A DNA stretch of 64,000 bases from sequence record OR413585.1; one strand, written 5' to 3'. The translations under genes and the position numbers were made by a program. Positions within the stretch are counted from its first letter, which is position 1. The number at the start of each line of letters is the position of its first letter. This document shows, one piece after another, positions 3,433 to 31,185 of the stretch. The notes beneath the pieces are model-generated. The model did not search any database and was not told the origin of the DNA. It saw only the letters and a program-made list of their open reading frames with translations.

Positions 3433-5076
3433 ATGGCGAAGATTGCGTCCAAATTAATCGACAAGGATCGCGGGTTCGAAGTCTGGGACCCGAGTGAATT
3501 GTACGAACCAAACAAACCAACAGGTTACGTACCTAACCCACGTGACCTTATCGTGAACGACATGACCTCCGGCTTTGACCGCGTGGTTAGCGTAAACTAT
3601 TCGGTACCGTCGTGGGAAACAGAACCGTTCGGTGGCGTTGGTGTAGCAAACCAAGACGGGCGTCTTAATGGTCACTACCCACTACGCTCTGACAGATATC
3701 GCGTCTACGTGGACAGCACCAAACTTCCACCGACGATGGTTATCGATGATGCCGTCACTTTCAACGGTCCCGATATCGACGGTGTGCGTATCCTGCGTGG
3801 GTCATCTGTAAACGATGATGCGGAAATCCTGTCTGGTTATTACAAAGACGGGGTTCTGAAAAAGAACTATCTGCCGGTGCAGACTATCAGTGCGGCTGAC
3901 GCAGAAACTGTGGTGAAACAAGCGATTCCTGGGAGCTGTCTGGCTGAAGTCAGTAACGGTGAAGAGTGTACTTTCCTGGTTTACTCTGACACCGGTAACG
4001 TTGTTCAGATCGCCCACGGTCACATCATCAAGACCAATCTGGTGATGGCGCAAGAGACTCCGTCTCGCACTGTGCTAGGTATTAAACTGGTTTCACCGTT
4101 CCTGGTAGACGACAATGGTACTACGCTGACGCTGCCGATTAACATCCCGCTGGAATCTATTCCGCTGTGGTGTGACATCCAGTACAGCGACGGAACCAAA
4201 CGCCTACCTATCGATGGTTCGCGTGTGAAGTTTAACGGTCTGCGTAACTCTGGTGCACATGACACGTTTTACATCGCTTCAAACGCCGGTAATGAGTTAC
4301 CTTGCCAGTTAAGTTATCAGTTGGCTCGCGGTGAAACCTACGGTGGTACTGACATTGTTAAAGATACAATTGTCAAAGACTACACCGCTGTAACCGAAAC
4401 AGTCGATGGTGCTTATTCCATGAAGCTGTTTGTGGTTCCGCGTTGGTTGGATGCGAACCGTGGTTATCGTCTGTCGTTCCTGCTGTACAACCTGACACGC
4501 GGCCAAGTCTACGACGCGACCGCAAACATCCAGTACACCACAGGGACTACATTCGACCCACTGTTGATGGGTGTGAAACAGCGTCTGAATGTGCAGGTGG
4601 ATATCAGCAAAGTAAATCCACAATTCCGCGCATTCATCCAGGCGCAGTCTTTCGCCATCACGTTAGTGAACCCAGGTAACGAGTTGAATACCAACTTCCT
4701 TATCGAATACCTGCCTGATGGGCTGGTCTACGGTAATGAAATTTGGGCGGAGTTCAAATACTCTAACGTCAACTACTCCACGCTGAACCTTCGTTGTGGT
4801 TGTGCCTCTAAAGCCGAGTGGCTTAAAGCGTTGTACGAGCCGATTTATCCGCTCTACGATCGTCGTAATGAATCTGAGGCTCCCGAGCCTACACACTTTG
4901 AGGTGCATGTCGGTGGTAAGGTTTACACCCACAGCATCGATGAGTGGTTAAATGAGCAAACGGTAGATTATCGTATCGCTCTGGACGATTCGTTAGTTAT
5001 TCGCTGGATTCGTCGCACTCCTACGGATACGCTTAACCTCGCGGCTACGCCAATGCTGGCGCACCACATCGAGTAA
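3433..5076 (+). CDS. Probable virion structural protein (547 aa)
   Basis: Long ORF 2 nt after the previous stop; sequence looks beta-rich; immediately upstream of the terminase. Confidence 0.55.
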   Translation: MAKIASKLIDKDRGFEVWDPSELYEPNKPTGYVPNPRDLIVNDMTSGFDRVVSVNYSVPSWETEPFGGVGVANQDGRLNGHYPLRSDRYRVYVDSTKLPPTMVIDDAVTFNGPDIDGVRILRGSSVNDDAEILSGYYKDGVLKKNYLPVQTISAADAETVVKQAIPGSCLAEVSNGEECTFLVYSDTGNVVQIAHGHIIKTNLVMAQETPSRTVLGIKLVSPFLVDDNGTTLTLPINIPLESIPLWCDIQYSDGTKRLPIDGSRVKFNGLRNSGAHDTFYIASNAGNELPCQLSYQLARGETYGGTDIVKDTIVKDYTAVTETVDGAYSMKLFVVPRWLDANRGYRLSFLLYNLTRGQVYDATANIQYTTGTTFDPLLMGVKQRLNVQVDISKVNPQFRAFIQAQSFAITLVNPGNELNTNFLIEYLPDGLVYGNEIWAEFKYSNVNYSTLNLRCGCASKAEWLKALYEPIYPLYDRRNESEAPEPTHFEVHVGGKVYTHSIDEWLNEQTVDYRIALDDSLVIRWIRRTPTDTLNLAATPMLAHHIE

Positions 5077-10647: not shown

Positions 10648-10698
10648 GGCGTACTCTCTTCGGGGAGTACGCCAATCTTATTTTTTTTTTATTTTTTT
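10648..10698 (+). terminator. Intrinsic terminator
   Basis: GGCGTACTCTC-TTCG-GGGAGTACGCC followed by a long T run. Confidence 0.85.
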
Positions 10699-11233
10699 GG
10701 TTACTTTTTAACCAACCGGTTAAAGGGGTCTGGGAAGCATCAGAAAACGATTAGGTGGTATCGACGTAGGGTAGCTCGTTTTTGGCAGTTTATCGTTTTC
10801 TAGGGTCGGTTACGTGCGTTTTAGAGGGGGTTATGTATCGAGACAGAGAATTTATTTTTGTCGAGGCGAGGAAATTCAGGGAATGGGGATTCAGGATTGT
10901 ATGTTTTTTAACCAGTTATTAAAAACGCTCTAGAAAGCGCTAGAACGAGATTTAACTCAGACCCAGTACACTTGGGTTCCCTATACCGGAAAATCGCGCC
11001 AGCGGGCCGCTGAGAGCGCGAGAGTGCCATTCCCGTTTCGGTTCCGAGGTGACGGTCGCGGCCGGCGACGACGATCACACGTTGGGTAGCACTTCGTGCC
11101 ATGTCTGAGTGAAAACTGGATCGTTCTGTAACCGACACACACTGTCGGTTACTTACGAGTTCTTTGGGTTGTTTAACTCGCTCTAAAATCCCCCTTAGGG
11201 GATAATTTAATCTAATTCTCAAAATTTCTTTTT

Positions 11234-11490
11234 AAAACAATCACTTAGATTGTTTTTTAGATTGATCCTGTGGATCGGGTCGAAGACCCTTTCCTTATAC
11301 GCGTGCGCGTGCGCACACCCGTATCCTCCAGGATCTTTTAAAAGATATATAATAATATTAAATATAATAATACCTTTAGGTATTATATTTAATTATTATA
11401 ATTATTTATATAAATAAATATATTAATATATTAAGATCTTAAAACGCGTGCAGGCGCGCGCGTGATCCTTATTAAGAGATCGTGATCGGA
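11234..11490. other. Candidate replication origin or packaging site: AT-rich palindrome cluster
   Basis: About 110 bp of almost pure A/T made of stacked palindromes, flanked by ACGCGTGC on both sides; 7 GATC sites between 11264 and 11487. Confidence 0.45.
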
Positions 11491-12400
11491 CGGAAGTCCT
11501 AGTTTGGGTACCCTGTGTATTTTTTACGTGGTTTCCCTATCGTGTGTTCAGACCACCACTCGATGTCCAAAACCCATAGCTTCGGTGGTCGCCTCCCTGG
11601 TCGGTAGACTCTGACAAGTCGACCCACAACACCAACCCGTCCGGGGACGGATTTTTATTCCAACGACAAGCTCCACGAAAATCCCCGCAGAGGGACTCAC
11701 CGCTGTGTGACTCACCGGCTCCTGGACGCCTACGCCTCGAGCCGGTAATTTTTTGATTACGTGAGTTTGTTGTTATATGCGAATAGCGATTGACCGCGCC
11801 AATGGTCCAATCACTTTTAAACCCTGTACGCTAGGGCTCCAAGTCCTGGGACTGATACCCAGGACGCTTTTTCGAAAATACCTACCGTGGTGTCTTCGAC
11901 AAAGCGCAATCTAACACTGCGTGATTTATTATGTTCTGGAAAACTTTCGCCGTGGAACAGAACCGGTGAGCGTCGGCGGGGATTCCGACAATCACCACCC
12001 ATTCAGGTACTCGGTAAATAACCGACCTGCCGACGGTGCTACGTCGGGCGTAGTTCGGTTTGCGAGAGTGTCGAGAAAGTCGACTGCGCACCCATGACAA
12101 AATCCGAGTTGACCGTGGCAGCGCCAGAGGACTGGGCAGCGGAGAGACGTCGTTGAACTTACCTCCGATAGTTATCGCTGATTCCGCTCTGGCGTCGGGC
12201 CAAAACTGATTCGAATTCGGCGTTGCGTCGAAAAGGGGTCTGCGTGTAGAACCGCAGACTTGGGGGATAACTCCGATGAGGAGGTTGGTCCATATCTTGC
12301 CGGCTCGGAACAGACGAGAGGGGTGGGTACTCCCGTTGTGAAACGCCAGTACCTGGCTGATTAAAATTTACAGATTCTGCGTGAGGTATGATAAACCAAA
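11490..12400 (+). ncRNA. Putative structured non-coding RNA block (one large or several small RNAs)
   Basis: No credible ORF; more than ten hairpins, GAAA/GTGA loops, and three stems followed by T tracts. Strand inferred from the T tracts. Confidence 0.4.
12362..12391 (+). promoter_or_regulatory. Candidate promoter (TAAAATTTAC ... GGTATGAT)
   Basis: Middle-type motif plus TATG upstream of the GGAG RBS of the 12415 gene. Confidence 0.45.
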
Positions 12401-13571: not shown

Positions 13572-13647
13572 AGGAAAGTGACGCAATTGGTAGCGTACCG
13601 GTCTCCAAAACCGGCTGTTTAGAGTTCGAGTCTCTACTTTCCTGCCA
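13572..13647 (+). tRNA. trnW: tRNA-Trp (CCA)
   Basis: Complete 76-nt cloverleaf: AGGAAAG/CTTTCCT acceptor, CCGGT-CTCCAAA-ACCGG anticodon arm, TAGAG-TTCGAGT-CTCTA T arm, encoded CCA end. Confidence 0.93.
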
Positions 13648-13713
13648 CATTTAGCCAACAAGCCCATGATTCAAAGCAGAGTGACACCGAATGTCTAACT
13701 GCGGAGAATAATC

Positions 13714-13956
13714 ATGAACTTGTATTTGCTAGAACGAACTGACGATATCGGGTATGATGAATTTGATTCCATAATCGTGGCGGCTCCTACGGAGCAAGCC
13801 GCGTGTGCAATTCCTCCCGACCGTGGTCATTGGATGGACTGCCGCTGGTTACCGAAAGAGCGCTGGGATGAAGGGCTTACCCTGACCGTTACTCTTATCG
13901 GTACTACGCATTATCCTGCTGGGACCGTCGTTCATGAATCGTTCAATGCTGGCTAA
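13714..13956 (+). CDS. Hypothetical protein (80 aa), single-domain paralog of the 12415 protein
   Basis: GGAG RBS; MNLYLLE..IIVAAPTEQAA; followed by an AGTGGGC-TTCG-GCCCACT hairpin. Confidence 0.7.
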   Translation: MNLYLLERTDDIGYDEFDSIIVAAPTEQAACAIPPDRGHWMDCRWLPKERWDEGLTLTVTLIGTTHYPAGTVVHESFNAG

Positions 13957-13974
13957 ACAGTGGGCTTCGGCCCA

Positions 13975-15000
13975 CTAACCCTATTCGAGCCGTGATACTT
14001 ACTCAGATTGTGCGGGTTGATGTCCCGCATGAGCCGGTAGCAGCTCAGACCTACGGTAAGCCGATAAATCCGTAGCAGCCAGGTACACAAAGCACCAGGT
14101 CGCTTGTACAGGATGCTGGGTATCTGACCGGTCATAACCTCATTCGATACGAGACACGTTTATGCATGAAATACTCCAGTACATCAGGATGTTGATTTCC
14201 AACGTCCAGTTCTGGGTATTCAATCATGTTTGGTTTACAGGCGATGGGTTTTCCCGCAAGGGCCCCACTTACAGACTGGCGTCTCCACGACAACCGTCCC
14301 TAGGGGACAGGCAAGCACCGGCCCATTAAGCCGCTACGCTACGCCTGTAAATCCACAATCTGATAACCGAATGGGATTGAGTTCCCAGTGTTAGGGTGAC
14401 TGTGTGTCACCGTAGGCGCGGTACCTCATACGGCCGGAACGCCACGAATGTACGTGATAGCGGGTGGTGCTTGGAGGCGCTAAGACCTGACCTTGCGGCC
14501 AGGCTCAGAAGAAGAAGTCCATCACCCGCATTCAGAAATGAATTTAGGTTAATTATTATTTATGGAAGTGATGAAATCGTTTACGTGATAACTTAGTAGT
14601 ATGCAACGAACAATACCAGAGTGACTTTACGAGGTTACTGTGGTATATGTCGGTGCTCCGGGCAACGTGTTGCCGCAGATAAGCCCGAGGGAGCTGAGTG
14701 CACTAACACACGCCGGGATGCACCGGCACCTTACAATGGGAGCGCTGTCACCATCAGTGATGACAGGAGTGAAGGATTCGTACCTCACTCGACTGGGCGG
14801 AAGCCTGGGCGTTCCCCCATCTTCACATCATGGCCGGCTTGCCGGTTCAACGTAGACGTCTCGTAAGAGATTTCCAGTCAGGTAACTGATAACACACCTA
14901 AGCGTCGACCTTGGACGTATGGTGTCTGGTTAAGTCCCCCGAAACGGAAACCAGTAGGGGTGTGGTACGTTGAGTGTAACTATCATGATGCCATGAACAA
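13975..15000 (+). ncRNA. Putative structured non-coding RNA(s)
   Basis: ORF-poor; nested long stems (14232-14353, 14460-14529, 14613-14646) and GNRA loops (GCAA, GTAA). Confidence 0.45.
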
Positions 15001-15001
15001 T

Positions 15002-15071
15002 GGCTTTGTAGCTCAGGTAGGTAGAGCAACCTCTTCGAGGAAGGTCGCCGGTTCGAGTCCGGTCAAAGCAA
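15002..15071 (+). ncRNA. tRNA-like element with truncated anticodon arm
   Basis: GCTTTG/CAAAGC acceptor, GCTC/GAGC D arm and GCCGG-TTCGAGT-CCGGT T arm are normal, but the anticodon arm is only 13 nt (ACCTC-TTC-GAGGA); no CCA. Confidence 0.6.
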
Positions 15072-15150
15072 GAGCAGCGAAGTTAGAGGAATTAACACCC
15101 GACTCATAATCGGATATTTCGACGGTTCGAATCCGTCCGTTTGCTCGCCC
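15072..15150 (+). tRNA. Atypical tRNA with CAT anticodon (Met- or Ile2-like)
   Basis: CCGA-CTCATAA-TCGG anticodon arm, GACGG-TTCGAAT-CCGTC T arm, GTTA/TAAC D stem; 8-bp bulged acceptor stem, no U8, no encoded CCA. Confidence 0.55.
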
Positions 15151-15155
15151 CATTT

Positions 15156-15484
15156 GTGTTATCCTTATCCCGAAGGCATTCGAAATAAGACGCGTATCCA
15201 CACACGGGTCAAGGGTAACACGAACCACTTCCGCGGTCACCGTGTCCATTGCCGCCTACCTGCATGGGCTGTCCTCCGACACGGTGACTTCGGGCCAACT
15301 TACAGGCCAGGGCCGTTTGGGTTTTTCTTACGCATCCATCCAGAGCCACCTCGCGCCCTAGTCTGTATACCCCTTTTCTGTTCCTGGTTTGCCAACTAAA
15401 TCAATTAAGCCTGGTGCGTTGCCCTGGGAACAGAAAAACTTATTCGGTTACACACCGAACCCACCCACGAGGGATATGTCGTGG
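15156..15484 (+). ncRNA. Array of consecutive ~55-65-nt hairpins
   Basis: 11-bp stems at 15156/15211, 15236/15278 and 15374/15427, an interrupted stem at ~15301-15366, and two small hairpins. Confidence 0.45.
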
Positions 15485-16571: not shown

Positions 16572-17519
16572 ATGTACAGATCAAGTAATCCTAGTGCTAT
16601 TGAAGGATTAAACCAGGATGGCTTCAGCCTCGCAGAAGCAACCCGCATTCGACCTTTCTTACCTCGCAGATTCTTCCCTTTCGGTTCGTTATACAGAACG
16701 AATTTCGACGCTTGGGAAGCGATACGTGCTGTAAAAGATGCACTACAGTACAAGAACTTCGAATTCCGATTTGTTTTCAAATGGGGCAACGGCGAATTGC
16801 TCCACCACTTCGGATTCCAACAGAACGAGTTCATTGAGTATACCTCACCTACGTACCACACCAGGTTCTTAAGTATCGAATTCGTTCGCCATTTCGGCGA
16901 TGCACTCTTTACGGAACGGGCTACAGATGAAAACCACGGACGTAGGCTGATGTTAACGAACGGCGCACTGCGCATCAAGATGAATCGTTTACGGGAAGCG
17001 TATAACCAGCTTATCAATCCTGAACCGGTAATGTTTCCAACTGTAGCTGATTTGAACATTACACCGCTCCAGTTACCTGTGGATGTGGATAGACCGATTC
17101 TGGCAATCCACGCTCTCCAGGCAGGCTATGCAAACTGGTATAAAGAGCACAGTCTCCCGAACACCAGATTGAACATCGCACCGTTTGAGTTGTGCCTGTT
17201 CTTAACGTTACGCAAACAACTCGAGCCAGAAAACTTAGACTTACGTTATCTGGCTAAAACAGATAGCGGTAGTTACTACCCAACGACCTGGATGCTGGCG
17301 GCTGTACTACCCGGCGGTGAAATTATCGGTAACCCAGTCACCGATGTTCAACAGTTACCATCACCGTTAGCACCACCGAAAGATTCAATCTATCCGTACG
17401 CTTCGTGGTACGCGAGCAGTATTGGCGTGAGATGGTTAATGTTACACGTTCCTGAAGAGGTCTATAATTTATTCCCGCATGAGCAATGGCTCCGTGCGTA
17501 TGAAAATCGGTTTGGTTAG
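16572..17519 (+). CDS. Hypothetical protein (315 aa)
   Basis: AAGG RBS, intact ORF between a promoter motif and a terminator. Confidence 0.75.
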   Translation: MYRSSNPSAIEGLNQDGFSLAEATRIRPFLPRRFFPFGSLYRTNFDAWEAIRAVKDALQYKNFEFRFVFKWGNGELLHHFGFQQNEFIEYTSPTYHTRFLSIEFVRHFGDALFTERATDENHGRRLMLTNGALRIKMNRLREAYNQLINPEPVMFPTVADLNITPLQLPVDVDRPILAIHALQAGYANWYKEHSLPNTRLNIAPFELCLFLTLRKQLEPENLDLRYLAKTDSGSYYPTTWMLAAVLPGGEIIGNPVTDVQQLPSPLAPPKDSIYPYASWYASSIGVRWLMLHVPEEVYNLFPHEQWLRAYENRFG

Positions 17520-29461: not shown

Positions 29462-30829
29462 GTGAGAAAGGTACCAAAATTCTACGGAATATCCGGCCGG
29501 TTGGTTAGTCAGGATAACTATTTGTCCGATTTGCAAATAGAAGCTGCTGCCAAAGGTATTAAACCACCCACTATTATTAACGATGTCGCCGTTAACGGGG
29601 ATGCGATCGAGGTTGCTGAACTTATCGATCGCATGGTACAGAACAGAATCGTTGACGAAGAACTGAACTCTGCACCGATTTGTAGTTTGGATTGTCCGGC
29701 ACCGATCGCGCATCGTTACAATCTCGGTTGTAAGTGTCCGACGTGTGGCTATGTTGTAACTGAACATCGAATTGAATCCGATGTCTGGTTACGTGCACCC
29801 GATGAAATGGGTAACTTCGTCAACCCACGATTCTGGGCAATGTTCAATGCTTTCTTTAATAGCAAGTTGAAGAAGTTTGAACGTAACAAGGTCACTATCG
29901 AACGCGGTAATGACTTGATGATGTGGATGATTGACCCGTATTACCGTATAGAAGAACCAGACGGTAAACGCGCACATGCTGTGAAACGTGTATTGGAAGA
30001 ACATGGTTTCGTTCGTGGCTTGCGCAATCTGGTTGATAACCACGTTAGTATCTTTAACATCCTTACCACGCCAGAAGCCTGGAAGGAAATCTTCGCACCT
30101 AATCGGCATAACGCCGCTGAAGGTGAACGCTTACGTTTACAATGGAAGGAGCTATTCGAAACGCAACGTCACGCATTCTTCCCAAGACATTTACCGCTAA
30201 TCTCCTCTAAACTTATCGTTACTGAGGAAGGTCGTCGTGGTGTCATGGTAGACCCAGTGTTCACGGGTGCTATTGATGCGGTGAAAAATATCGCGTTGCT
30301 CTATACGCGGCGTAAAGCGATCGAACCACGTTTTCTGATTAGTCGCGCTTTGAAGGCGAACCGTCAGTTAACGTACTTCCACATGGACTTCCGTCGTGAG
30401 TCTATGGAAGGTAAACCGGGTGACTATCGTGCGAAATTGGGTTCTACCCATATCCCGTTCGGTGGTCGTGCAACCATCTCACCTATCTCAGAACCACACG
30501 ATGCCTGGAAGTTAAAAGCACCGTGGCGTTGGATGGTTGGGTTGATGTCGACCCACATCGAGAACAAACTGCTACGACGGGGTTATTCGTCACGGCAGTG
30601 TGAACGTATCGTTGCGAAAGCGGCAATGCAGTATGACCCGCTTGTAGACGAAATCTTTAAAGAACTGATTCGTGAATCCCCAGGCGGTCTTGGGATCATG
30701 GTCATACCGTTACGTAACCCAACGCTGGTACAGTTGTCTATTCAAACGCTGTACATCGATGAAGTTGTTACCGATGTTAACCAGTGTTCGCTGCGTATCT
30801 CTGACCGTGTGATCAAGATGGCTAACGGT
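29462..30829 (+). CDS. Non-virion RNA polymerase beta' N-terminal subunit, exon 1
   Basis: Zn-ribbon CKCPTCG, GGRATISP and LRNPTL motifs; the exon ends at ..MANG just before the catalytic DFDGD. Confidence 0.85.
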
Positions 30830-31185
30830 TCGAAAAGAGCCCCATCGGACGGGAAACCTCTGATGCGTATTCTCCTGAAATGCTGGGAAACCCTAAAGCG
30901 TATCTACCAGAAATGGGGACGAAAGTCTGAAACAACAGATACGATGACCTACGCTAAACAATACTGCTAAGGGTTGTGTTGATGGGTAATCAGCAGCGAA
31001 GCCTCGTGAGAGGAACGTTCAACGACTATCGCTGAAATGCGAGTAGGGGTCCTAGTGGACTTCGAAGTGGGAGAACACCTAAGGCGAAAGCTATGGTGAA
31101 GATATAGTCTGTGCCTTATCGAGAGATAAGGAGGGTGTCTTAGCACACCTGCTGTATACGGAAACGGTATACGGTGGACAAACAG
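30830..31185 (+). mobile_element. Group I intron (IA-like, 356 nt, no homing endonuclease ORF)
   Basis: P1 GGT|TC-GAAAA-GAGCC with U.G pair; P AAATGCTGGGAA; Q AATCAGCAGC; R GTTCAACGACTAT; S AAGATATAGTCT; P3 TTCTCC/GGAGAA; P7.1 and P7.2 hairpins; terminal G. Splicing restores the frame N-G-D-F-D-G-D. Confidence 0.9.

Follow-up and report, generated by a model that had tools for sequence, protein, structure and literature searches.

Introduction

Large and highly structured non-ribosomal RNAs are rare, and each of the classes OLE, GOLLD, ROOL, raiA and HEARO has opened new biology. Two of these, ROOL and GOLLD, are phage or prophage RNAs that lie near transfer RNA (tRNA) islands and whose function is unknown (10.1101/2024.12.08.627333). 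In this study, a window of 64,000 nucleotides (nt) was analysed, which is the whole stretch of DNA considered here and has the coordinates of its sequence record, OR413585.1; it comes from SPLA5c, an SPN3US-like jumbo phage of Salmonella that belongs to the genus Seoulvirus. Positions 14002-14534 of this window are interpreted, by comparison with homologous sequences, as a single gene whose product, a structured RNA of ~530 nt, has not been described before and is specific to SPN3US-like jumbo phages. The element would be a third, unrelated example in the niche of the phage tRNA island, besides ROOL and GOLLD; what is new in it with respect to all five classes is a conserved open reading frame (ORF) threaded through the structure.

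ROOL and GOLLD are the closest known RNAs by niche and size: like them, the element is a large (>500 nt) ornate phage RNA beside tRNA genes, and as in GOLLD its 3' part is the most conserved. GOLLD is often longer than 800 nt, with a conserved 3' and a variable 5' part, and the element, at 523-592 nt, is too short for it. The element also differs from both RNAs in its setting, the jumbo phages of Enterobacterales hosts, and in holding a conserved, apparently translated ORF. A defining feature of ROOL and GOLLD is a nanocage, built as an RNA-only homo-oligomer.

The tRNA cluster of phage T4 likewise contains stable RNAs that are not tRNAs (species 1 and 2, rnaC/rnaD) and that are co-matured with the tRNAs; unlike the element, these are ~120-140 nt long and have no ORF. 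In function, the closest resemblance is to dual-function RNAs together with MS2-type pairings. SgrS/SgrT, RNAIII/hld and SR1/SR1P are dual-function RNAs of ~200-500 nt, each a structured RNA and the messenger RNA (mRNA) of a small peptide, and they base-pair with targets. The element shares with them the apparent use of one transcript as structured RNA and mRNA, but its ORF is itself folded into the structure. In the coat/replicase 'Min Jou' interaction of MS2, and in the ermC and trp leader peptides, ribosome passage opens a long-range pairing. In the element, too, a segment of the ORF is predicted to pair with a distant downstream segment; the difference is that the segment that would be freed shows no evident ribosome-binding site with a downstream cistron, and inspection found there only an AUG frame of 7-8 codons without a Shine-Dalgarno (SD) motif in most homologues. 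The likeness to transfer-messenger RNA (tmRNA, SsrA) lies in a structured RNA that is tied to tRNA genes and contains a short frame with its stop in a structured region. The ORF of the element differs in having its own AUG and SD-like motif and in being five times as long as the tmRNA tag.

Extent and distribution of the element

A sequence-only reading of the window had marked 13975-15000 as a single structured block of about 1 kb, possibly a new class of RNA next to phage tRNAs, and had seen no convincing ORF in it. The proposal of a new large structured RNA beside phage tRNAs holds for part of this interval, 14002-14534. The boundaries do not hold, since the conserved element ends at 14534; nor does the lack of an ORF, since a conserved frame of 55 codons lies inside the element. 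What fills the 3' third of the interval is the remnant of a tRNA array, variable by indels, together with a small cloverleaf RNA that is separate from the element. The two main features are as follows.

14002-14534, + strand: whole conserved structured RNA element, 533 nt in SPLA5c, delimited by full-length alignment of homologues
14162-14329, + strand: conserved small ORF of 55 amino acids (aa), with an ATG start and an invariant UAA stop in a hairpin loop

The element was found in phages of the genera Seoulvirus, Machinavirus, Erskinevirus and Wellingtonvirus, as well as in metagenomic contigs related to them; alignments and covariance-model matches gave at least 19 distinct phage or contig sequences. 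It occurs as a single copy per genome, always directly upstream at the head of a tRNA array, and no paralogue was found in the window. Region 13703-14731 is colinear with the phages SPAsTU and pEa_SNUABM_29 at ~76% identity, and the core at 14296-14533 is ~70-79% identical in ~27 Erwinia jumbo phages and pSal-SNUABM-04. Further distinct members came from pattern scans of IMG/VR, JGI metagenomes and Logan assemblies and from look-ups of the small ORF, all of them on contigs of jumbo-phage type. The extra scans of IMG/VR and metagenomes gave nothing beyond close relatives, and 21 of 30 pattern matches in metagenomes were due to chance.

The members form three main clades, with 55-65% nucleotide identity between clades and near-invariant cores. 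A neighbouring protein encoded at 16572-17519 is just 35-51% identical in amino acids between the same clades, so the conservation of the RNA does not merely reflect low divergence. A search for more distant phages through this protein recovered the same set of phages and none further. A blastn search of 5,426 E. coli genomes with a limit of E<=10 found no homologue in the host; across bacteria and archaea, with one genome for each of 185,579 species, a pattern scan gave five chance matches and no covariance-model match. The searchable literature on SPN3US, Chimalliviridae and jumbo-phage non-coding RNAs yielded no description of the element.

In OR413585.1, nothing is annotated between an 80-aa ORF at 13714-13956 and a minus-strand ORF at 15013-15249. 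SPAsTU and pEa_SNUABM_29 have the homologous stretch followed by a genuine tRNA array (Tyr, Glu, Asp, Ile, Gln, Asn), and the Machinavirus, Erskinevirus and Wellingtonvirus phages of Erwinia have an unannotated gap of 390-770 nt ahead of arrays of 5-12 tRNAs. The SPN3US group has kept the element intact and nearly unchanged although most of its tRNA array is gone, which suggests that the function of the element is not strictly in cis to the tRNAs. In most genome records the region has been left unannotated or been given spurious ORFs, in Wellington on the wrong strand. Several records annotate 'hypothetical proteins' across the element; the coding sequence (CDS) WELLINGTON_5 of Erwinia phage Wellington (locus L021, 1731-1940, minus strand), which lies opposite the 3' domain, is probably a spurious call.

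Secondary structure and covariation

RNAalifold was applied to the 5' and 3' thirds of the element, covariance models were made from the result, and 19 distinct sequences were realigned and their pairs counted; the controls were pairing partners slid by 1-3 columns and 500 shuffles. In the 5' domain, 97.6% of the cells were paired, 18 of 26 pairs had changed on both sides and the covariation score was 0.714, against 0.06-0.10 with 37-43% paired when the partners were slid. The corresponding values for the 3' domain were 98.2%, 15 of 36 pairs and 0.364, against 0.05-0.09 with 33-48% paired. None of the 500 shuffles reached the score of either domain (0/500 each), and several positions of the covarying helices show four Watson-Crick pair types. 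The + strand is taken as the RNA because many conserved G.U pairs of these helices would be A.C mismatches on the other strand; the tRNAs and flanking genes are on the + strand as well. The minimum free energy was lower than that of shuffled sequences for both 14002-14534 (z = -2.55) and 14535-15000 (z = -3.73). The reverse strand folds equally well (z = -3.53), and folding energy alone is therefore uninformative about strand or function; it is the comparison of homologues that decides.

The structural features of the element, apart from the long-range duplex described below, are listed here.

14008-14132, + strand: 5' domain, a hairpin and a three-way junction, with covariation in 19 sequences
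14010-14016/14024-14030, + strand: hairpin P1 of the 5' domain
14034-14038/14127-14131, + strand: P2, which closes the junction of the 5' domain
14051-14056/14070-14075, + strand: P3 of the 5' domain
14080-14086/14120-14126, + strand: P4 of the 5' domain
14087-14094, + strand: conserved bulge containing ACAAAG, beside P4 in the 5' domain
14095-14098/14116-14119, + strand: P5 of the 5' domain
14232-14353, + strand: central domain, closed by a 12-bp stem and overlapping the 3' half of the small ORF
14232-14243/14342-14353, + strand: 12-bp stem GGTTTACAGGCG/CGCCTGTAAATC with one G.U pair, as read in the sequence
14253-14262, 14273-14284 and 14296-14308, + strand: covarying hairpins within the central domain
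14314-14340, + strand: hairpin of AGC/GCU and CGGC/GCCG in the central domain, with the stop codon in its loop
14355-14363, + strand: unpaired and invariant ACAAUCUGA, located after the 12-bp stem and before the 3' strand of the long-range duplex
14395-14446, + strand: hairpin P13 (GGUGAC/GUCACC, 4 of 5 pairs compensatory), then a peripheral hairpin
14456-14533, + strand: 3' domain, a long irregular hairpin and the most conserved part, 97-98% paired, with 11 compensatory pairs in two helices

Conserved bases of the 5' domain are found in its junction and loops, namely the bulge containing ACAAAG and an ACC.GUAAG loop. The helices of the central domain are 69-100% paired per helix, and most of them show compensatory changes; in homologue L054, AGC/GCU is replaced by UGCA/UGCA. 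The 12-bp stem, which is 69% paired overall, is invariant in two clades, and the third keeps only GGUU/AACC. The peripheral hairpin has been swapped as a module between phages, being near-identical across clades and replaced by unrelated hairpins in close relatives. The 3' domain consists of P15 (GCGGGUGGUG/CAUCACCCGC with CUU/AAG), a purine-rich internal loop (GGAG/GAAG) and P16 (CCUG/CAGG). Its segments GGUGCUUGGAG and GAAGAAGUCCAUC are unchanged in 17 of 17 aligned homologues; a member found later, L056, reads AAUGCUUGGAG.

All the stems that had been picked out from the letters alone are present in the sequence: the 12-bp stem, CCC-GCAA-GGG (14253-14262), GTCCC/GGGAC (14296-14300/14304-14308), GGTGAC/GTCACC (14395-14400/14406-14411), GCGGGTGGTG/CATCACCCGC (14460-14469/14520-14529), ATACCA/TGGTAT (14613-14618/14641-14646), GAGTGA/TCACTC (14767-14772/14785-14790), TCTC-GTAA-GAGA (14859-14870) and CTGGTT/AACCAG (14926-14931/14949-14954), as is the TATG at 14600. 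Across the 19 homologues, covariation shows that the stems of the element are kept by compensatory change, the conservation that the sequence-only reading had asked for; among the stems it listed, such changes support GGTGAC/GTCACC, GCGGGTGGTG/CATCACCCGC, GTCCC/GGGAC and CCC/GGG.

The embedded small ORF and its predicted peptide

Every member of the family contains the small ORF, at 55-64 codons and including the divergent Wellington, and its TAA is conserved in all homologues. Across 15 homologues, no in-frame stop interrupts it, compared with 35 stops in each of the other two frames; 20 and 18 of these 35 fall within the variable first 90 nt. A purine-rich SD-like motif lies 4-14 nt ahead of the AUG in all homologues, and a small CUC...GAG hairpin overlaps it. 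The records of Asesino, pSal-SNUABM-04 and ChrisDB carry a CDS annotation for the small ORF.

The two halves of the frame evolve differently. In the first half, the mean pairwise difference is 0.56/0.37/0.54 at codon positions 1/2/3, and in several columns position 2 is invariant and positions 1 and 3 vary, a pattern that is read here as the signature of conserved hydrophobic residues. The second half shows no periodicity (0.41/0.36/0.41); its amino acids are poorly conserved and its nucleotides form covarying hairpins. On these patterns, the first half of the ORF is taken to evolve like a protein, as an amphipathic helix, and the second half to be constrained as RNA hairpins. The frame nevertheless stays open through ~30 codons of non-conserved tail up to the invariant stop in the hairpin loop, which suggests that selection keeps the transit of the ribosome. 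As in a dual-function RNA, the frame is under purifying selection and conserved structure lies both inside and outside the ORF.

AlphaFold2 predicted a single helix for the peptide (residues 2-26, pLDDT ~85) with a disordered remainder of low confidence; the helix is amphipathic and has many charged residues. In Pfam and PHROGs, the sole match of the peptide was phrog_26199, of unknown function, and the other ORF pieces in 13956-15109 had no match in either. A profile of the small ORF found 7 clusters among 5.8 billion proteins; those that were fetched or named, together with contigs of ~240 kb, were SPN3US-like jumbo-phage sequence.

A predicted long-range duplex between the ORF and a downstream segment

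In the RNAalifold consensus, a segment of the ORF pairs with a segment beyond the central domain.

14212-14233, + strand: 5' strand of the duplex, inside the small ORF (codons ~17-24)
14367-14388, + strand: 3' strand of the duplex, containing the near-invariant AUGGGAUURRGUUCCCAG

The ORF segment is the best upstream duplex partner of the downstream strand in 10 of 15 homologues, with -19 to -26 kcal/mol and z of -3.2 to -4.4. The duplex measures ~17-25 bp depending on the phage, and 23-25 bp in the Erskinevirus/Wellingtonvirus-type clade. Of its three segments, two are 81-87% canonical, as opposed to 20-61% when slid; the third, at 60%, is no better than slid. In pEa29, a GA-to-AG change in the downstream strand is matched by a C-to-U change on the ORF side. 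The downstream strand could alternatively form a local 5-bp hairpin, which is invariant.

Comparison with known RNA families

Among the 4227 families of Rfam, no match to the element was found, even at E<=10 on a stretch of 786 nt alone, and the view of a large ornate RNA beside phage tRNAs that is unlike GOLLD and ROOL was thereby borne out. The scans used gathering scores for the whole window, E<=10 for 6 kb and for the 786 nt, and E<=5 for 8 homologous loci; across the SPLA5c region and the 8 loci they returned tRNAs, a sub-threshold hairpin resembling the L17 leader and two chance matches to CRISPR repeats. The GOLLD model (RF01998) gave no match at the gathering score, at E<=10 on the 786 nt or in the 8 loci, and the ROOL model (RF03087) none in the window, in the 786 nt at E<=10 or in the 8 loci.

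Other candidates were rejected as well. For tmRNA there was neither an ARAGORN call nor an Rfam match, the ends of the element are not complementary, and it has no tRNA-like domain. The group I intron model (RF00028) finds a copy at 30810-31131 in the window but nothing at the element, even at E<=10, and no host gene is split there: the CDS upstream runs to a stop of its own, and relatives have complete tRNAs downstream. Bacterial RNase P RNA gave no match to RF00010 or RF00011; a likeness of GAAGAAGUCC to GGAAAGUCC is a lead only and was not relied on. The same applies to resemblances seen by eye, which had no model match: a AGAAGAAGUCC like the J8/7 of group I introns, a CR-I-like part of RNase P, tmRNA, T-box, a hammerhead (CUGAUGA occurs only in some homologues) and (ARN)n motifs for Hfq.

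The loop of the peripheral hairpin (14412-14446), CGGUACCUCAUACGGCCGG, has 18 of 19 bases of the consensus of the L17 ribosomal-protein leader. The L17 leader model (RF03132) scored 23.1 bits (E 0.84) against a gathering cut-off of 34.9, and three stem pairs are missing. The L17 leader lies upstream of rplQ (PMC7247131); there is no rplQ at the element, and the hairpin is an exchangeable peripheral module.

Proposed function and alternative explanations

That the locus encodes a real structured RNA with a real small ORF is considered highly probable. The overall reading favoured here, to which a probability of about 0.5 is given, is that of a bifunctional leader RNA of the tRNA array, in which folding and translation would be mutually exclusive and which would share a precursor with the tRNAs. 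The specific mechanism of switching and processing is put forward more tentatively. A mid-ORF stretch of about 22 nt would pair with the invariant downstream segment, so that translation and folding compete. A ribosome that reads the ORF would melt the duplex and the central domain, which would release the ACAAUCUGA bulge as well as the invariant 3' strand; copies that are not translated would take the compact fold, and translated copies an open form like that of an mRNA. The RNA and the tRNAs would be made on the same precursor, and RNase P cleavage at the first tRNA would set the 3' end of the RNA. This is suggested by the position of the first tRNA, ~7-16 nt past the last helix in most members checked of the Erskinevirus/Wellingtonvirus-type clade (7 nt to tRNA-Gly in Asesino, 16 nt in Wellington; a tRNA is also directly downstream in L012 and L014). 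The long duplex would be a plausible RNase III site for releasing or inactivating parts of the RNA.

Several observations weigh against the bifunctional leader. The duplex is only second-best in 2 of 15 homologues and weak in 3 of 15, and it shows little covariation (1 pair in P6b and 2 in P6c); the latter is limited because one strand is almost invariant. The start region of the ORF is just slightly less structured than the rest, with 0.43 unpaired against an average of 0.37 for the RNA. In Seoulvirus, the element and the array are ~200 nt apart, with an AT-rich spacer and the leader in between, and in some phages a ParB-like or HNH gene lies between the two; co-transcription with the tRNAs is thus not universal. 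The transcript ends, the co-transcription and the translation are all inferred. A phage nucleus separates transcription from translation in SPN3US and Asesino (PMC13282480), so any switch would act after transcription and export and would not be a transcription attenuation.

In a bolder form of the proposal, which is regarded as doubtful, the element would represent a new class of translation-gated ornate RNA: the passage of ribosomes would toggle it between a compact and an open form that exposes the invariant sequences, and this would either couple the translation state of the host to maturation or use of the tRNA array, or nucleate a particle of the RNA and its own peptide. The locus makes two questions testable, namely what leads phages to keep ornate RNAs beside their tRNA arrays and whether the fold of a large RNA can be switched by translation. 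The phages concerned, SPN3US-type phages of Salmonella and E. coli and nucleus-forming Erwinia jumbo phages, are a genetically tractable model.

The alternative that survives best, unlikely as it is, is a plain mRNA of a small phage protein. Here the 5' domain would control initiation in cis, as a sensor that resembles a riboswitch or binds a protein; the 3' domain would serve to stabilise the mRNA or to direct its processing, and the RNA would have no function of its own. The conserved ORF with its SD-like motif fits this explanation, as does a three-way-junction 5' domain of ~120 nt that has conserved junction and loop bases and ends ~30 nt before the AUG; the CUC...GAG hairpin over the SD-like motif could belong to such a control. 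The most conserved bases, however, are 3' of the ORF, in near-invariant stretches of 9-18 nt shared by four genera, which is unusual for a stabiliser in a 3' untranslated region. The C-terminal half of the peptide is unconserved and predicted to be disordered, and the same nucleotides form covarying hairpins; nor was there a match to any riboswitch in Rfam.

There is a smaller chance that the element is an RNA-only machine like ROOL or GOLLD, possibly self-assembling or ribosome-binding, with an ORF that is incidental or rarely translated. It occupies the same niche at the head of a phage tRNA array, has a ROOL-like size (523-592 nt) and many covarying helices, and its conserved unpaired bases suggest tertiary or intermolecular contacts; the palindromic loops GGUACC, GGCC and UUAA could, from their sequence, form kissing contacts. 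Against this stand the lack of similarity to the ROOL and GOLLD models and, above all, the ORF itself, as neither 0 stops versus 35/35 nor a period-3 pattern is expected of an incidental frame.

A cassette resembling a type I toxin-antitoxin system, or one for a host-directed peptide, is improbable. In the style of hok/sok, a folded mRNA would silence a helical peptide until it is processed, and the element does combine a small helical peptide with a highly structured mRNA and long-range pairing over the coding region. The helix, though, is amphipathic and charged and not a hydrophobic transmembrane segment. No antisense RNA or promoter was evident, in a scan that was limited to the sigma-70 consensus and uninformative, and the functional categories of PHROG gave no match (the PADLOC defence library was not searched).

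Debris of a decayed protein gene, of decayed tRNAs or of a degenerate self-splicing intron is hardly credible: the tRNA array of the SPN3US group is visibly decayed and the window has a genuine group I intron elsewhere (30810-31131), but 97-98% base-pair conservation with dozens of compensatory changes in four genera already contradicts it, no other ORF piece matches Pfam or PHROG, no Intron_gpI, tRNA or other Rfam model matches the element, and an upstream CDS with its own stop next to downstream tRNAs that are intact in relatives leaves no split host gene.

The flanks of the element and other features of the window

Four further features lie on either side of the element.

13960-13975, + strand: GUGGGC-UUCG-GCCCAC hairpin directly 3' of the stop of the 80-aa ORF, without a U-tract; 5' limit of the block
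14535-14737, + strand: Seoulvirus-specific AT-rich spacer (to ~14600) followed by a leader rich in hairpins; the stretch is conserved in Seoulvirus and, in part, Machinavirus
14738-14816, + strand: cloverleaf-shaped small RNA of ~79 nt that holds GAGTGA/TCACTC (fold -37.1 kcal/mol, z -2.6)
14817-14996, + strand: variable spacer for which only close relatives have a homologue

The hairpin at 13960-13975 has the same sequence in SPAsTU and pEa_SNUABM_29. The leader ends exactly at the start of tRNA-Tyr in pEa_SNUABM_29 and also ends at tRNA-Tyr in SPAsTU, and the segment from tRNA-Tyr through tRNA-Gln is deleted in the SPN3US group. An ACAATGG repeat occurs at the end of the tRNA-array leader and ahead of the cloverleaf RNA (14731-14745; ~4950-4965 and ~4075-4080 in locus L002). 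The loss of tRNA-Tyr to tRNA-Gln fits a recombination between two copies of ACAATGG, one at each edge of the deletion.

For 14740-14996, where three of the stems and a pseudoknot had been proposed, the picture is mixed. The cloverleaf at 14738-14816 is supported by comparison; the TCTC-GTAA-GAGA hairpin and the CTGGTT/AACCAG pseudoknot have no comparative support, and 14740-14996 is entirely missing from SPN3US itself. The cloverleaf RNA is 84-95% identical in SPAsTU, pEa29 and Asesino, across Seoulvirus and Erskinevirus, and shows compensatory changes; in Asesino it lies between tRNA-Ile and tRNA-His and is 90.6% identical. Its counterparts are at 3539-3620 in L019, 4961-5043 in L002, 5245-5326 in L003 and 1598-1670 in L010. 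Its acceptor-like stem of 7 bp precedes CCCA, and of its three arms the middle one carries a 7-nt loop (AUUCGUA) and another a GGAA tetraloop at the place of the T-loop. It was called by neither ARAGORN nor Rfam, and SPN3US lacks it; not being a canonical tRNA, it could be an aberrant one or a mimic.

The only tRNA called by ARAGORN is tRNA-Trp at 13572-13647. Rfam alone marks two tRNA-like sequences at 15002-15071 (40.9 bits) and 15074-15145 (30.6 bits), which ARAGORN does not call; the anticodon loop of the first is collapsed, and the second has a CAU anticodon and a flawed acceptor stem. Both are probably tRNA genes in decay. The minus-strand ORF 15013-15249 of SPLA5c is annotated across these two sequences (15002-15145).

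An insertion hot spot separates the remaining array from the element or from tRNA-Tyr (2783-3109 in L022, 3443-3769 in L054, 3535-4056 in L056 and 4241-4777 in L003). Its cargo includes a ParB-like ORF in pSal-SNUABM-04 and L054, an ORF with faint similarity to HNH_3 in L056 and an ORF of 178 aa in pEa_SNUABM_29. Just 3' of the element, the motif TATATATG(T) recurs in several clades (~3480-3560 in L004, ~3420 in L054 and ~3440 in L056), and in Machinavirus it coincides with the start codon of the small ORF (for example, at 3036-3047 in L004). This motif may be a phage promoter. The sequence-only reading had suggested that the TATG at 14600 may start a transcript; the promoter-like motifs GGTTAATTA, TATATATG and GTATATGT, which relate to this idea, were not enriched in the SPLA5c window; a scan for sigma-70 promoters and terminators also showed no enrichment, the sigma-70 consensus part being uninformative.

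The group I intron at 30810-31131 matches the full length of the Rfam model RF00028 with 67.9 bits. Another unannotated stretch, at 10680-12360, had been marked as a first block by the sequence-only reading. It has no Rfam match at the gathering score, and its 1.7 kb are conserved at the nucleotide level, with 71% identity to SPAsTU, 67% to pEa_SNUABM_29 and 77-80% in sub-segments to Asesino-type contigs.

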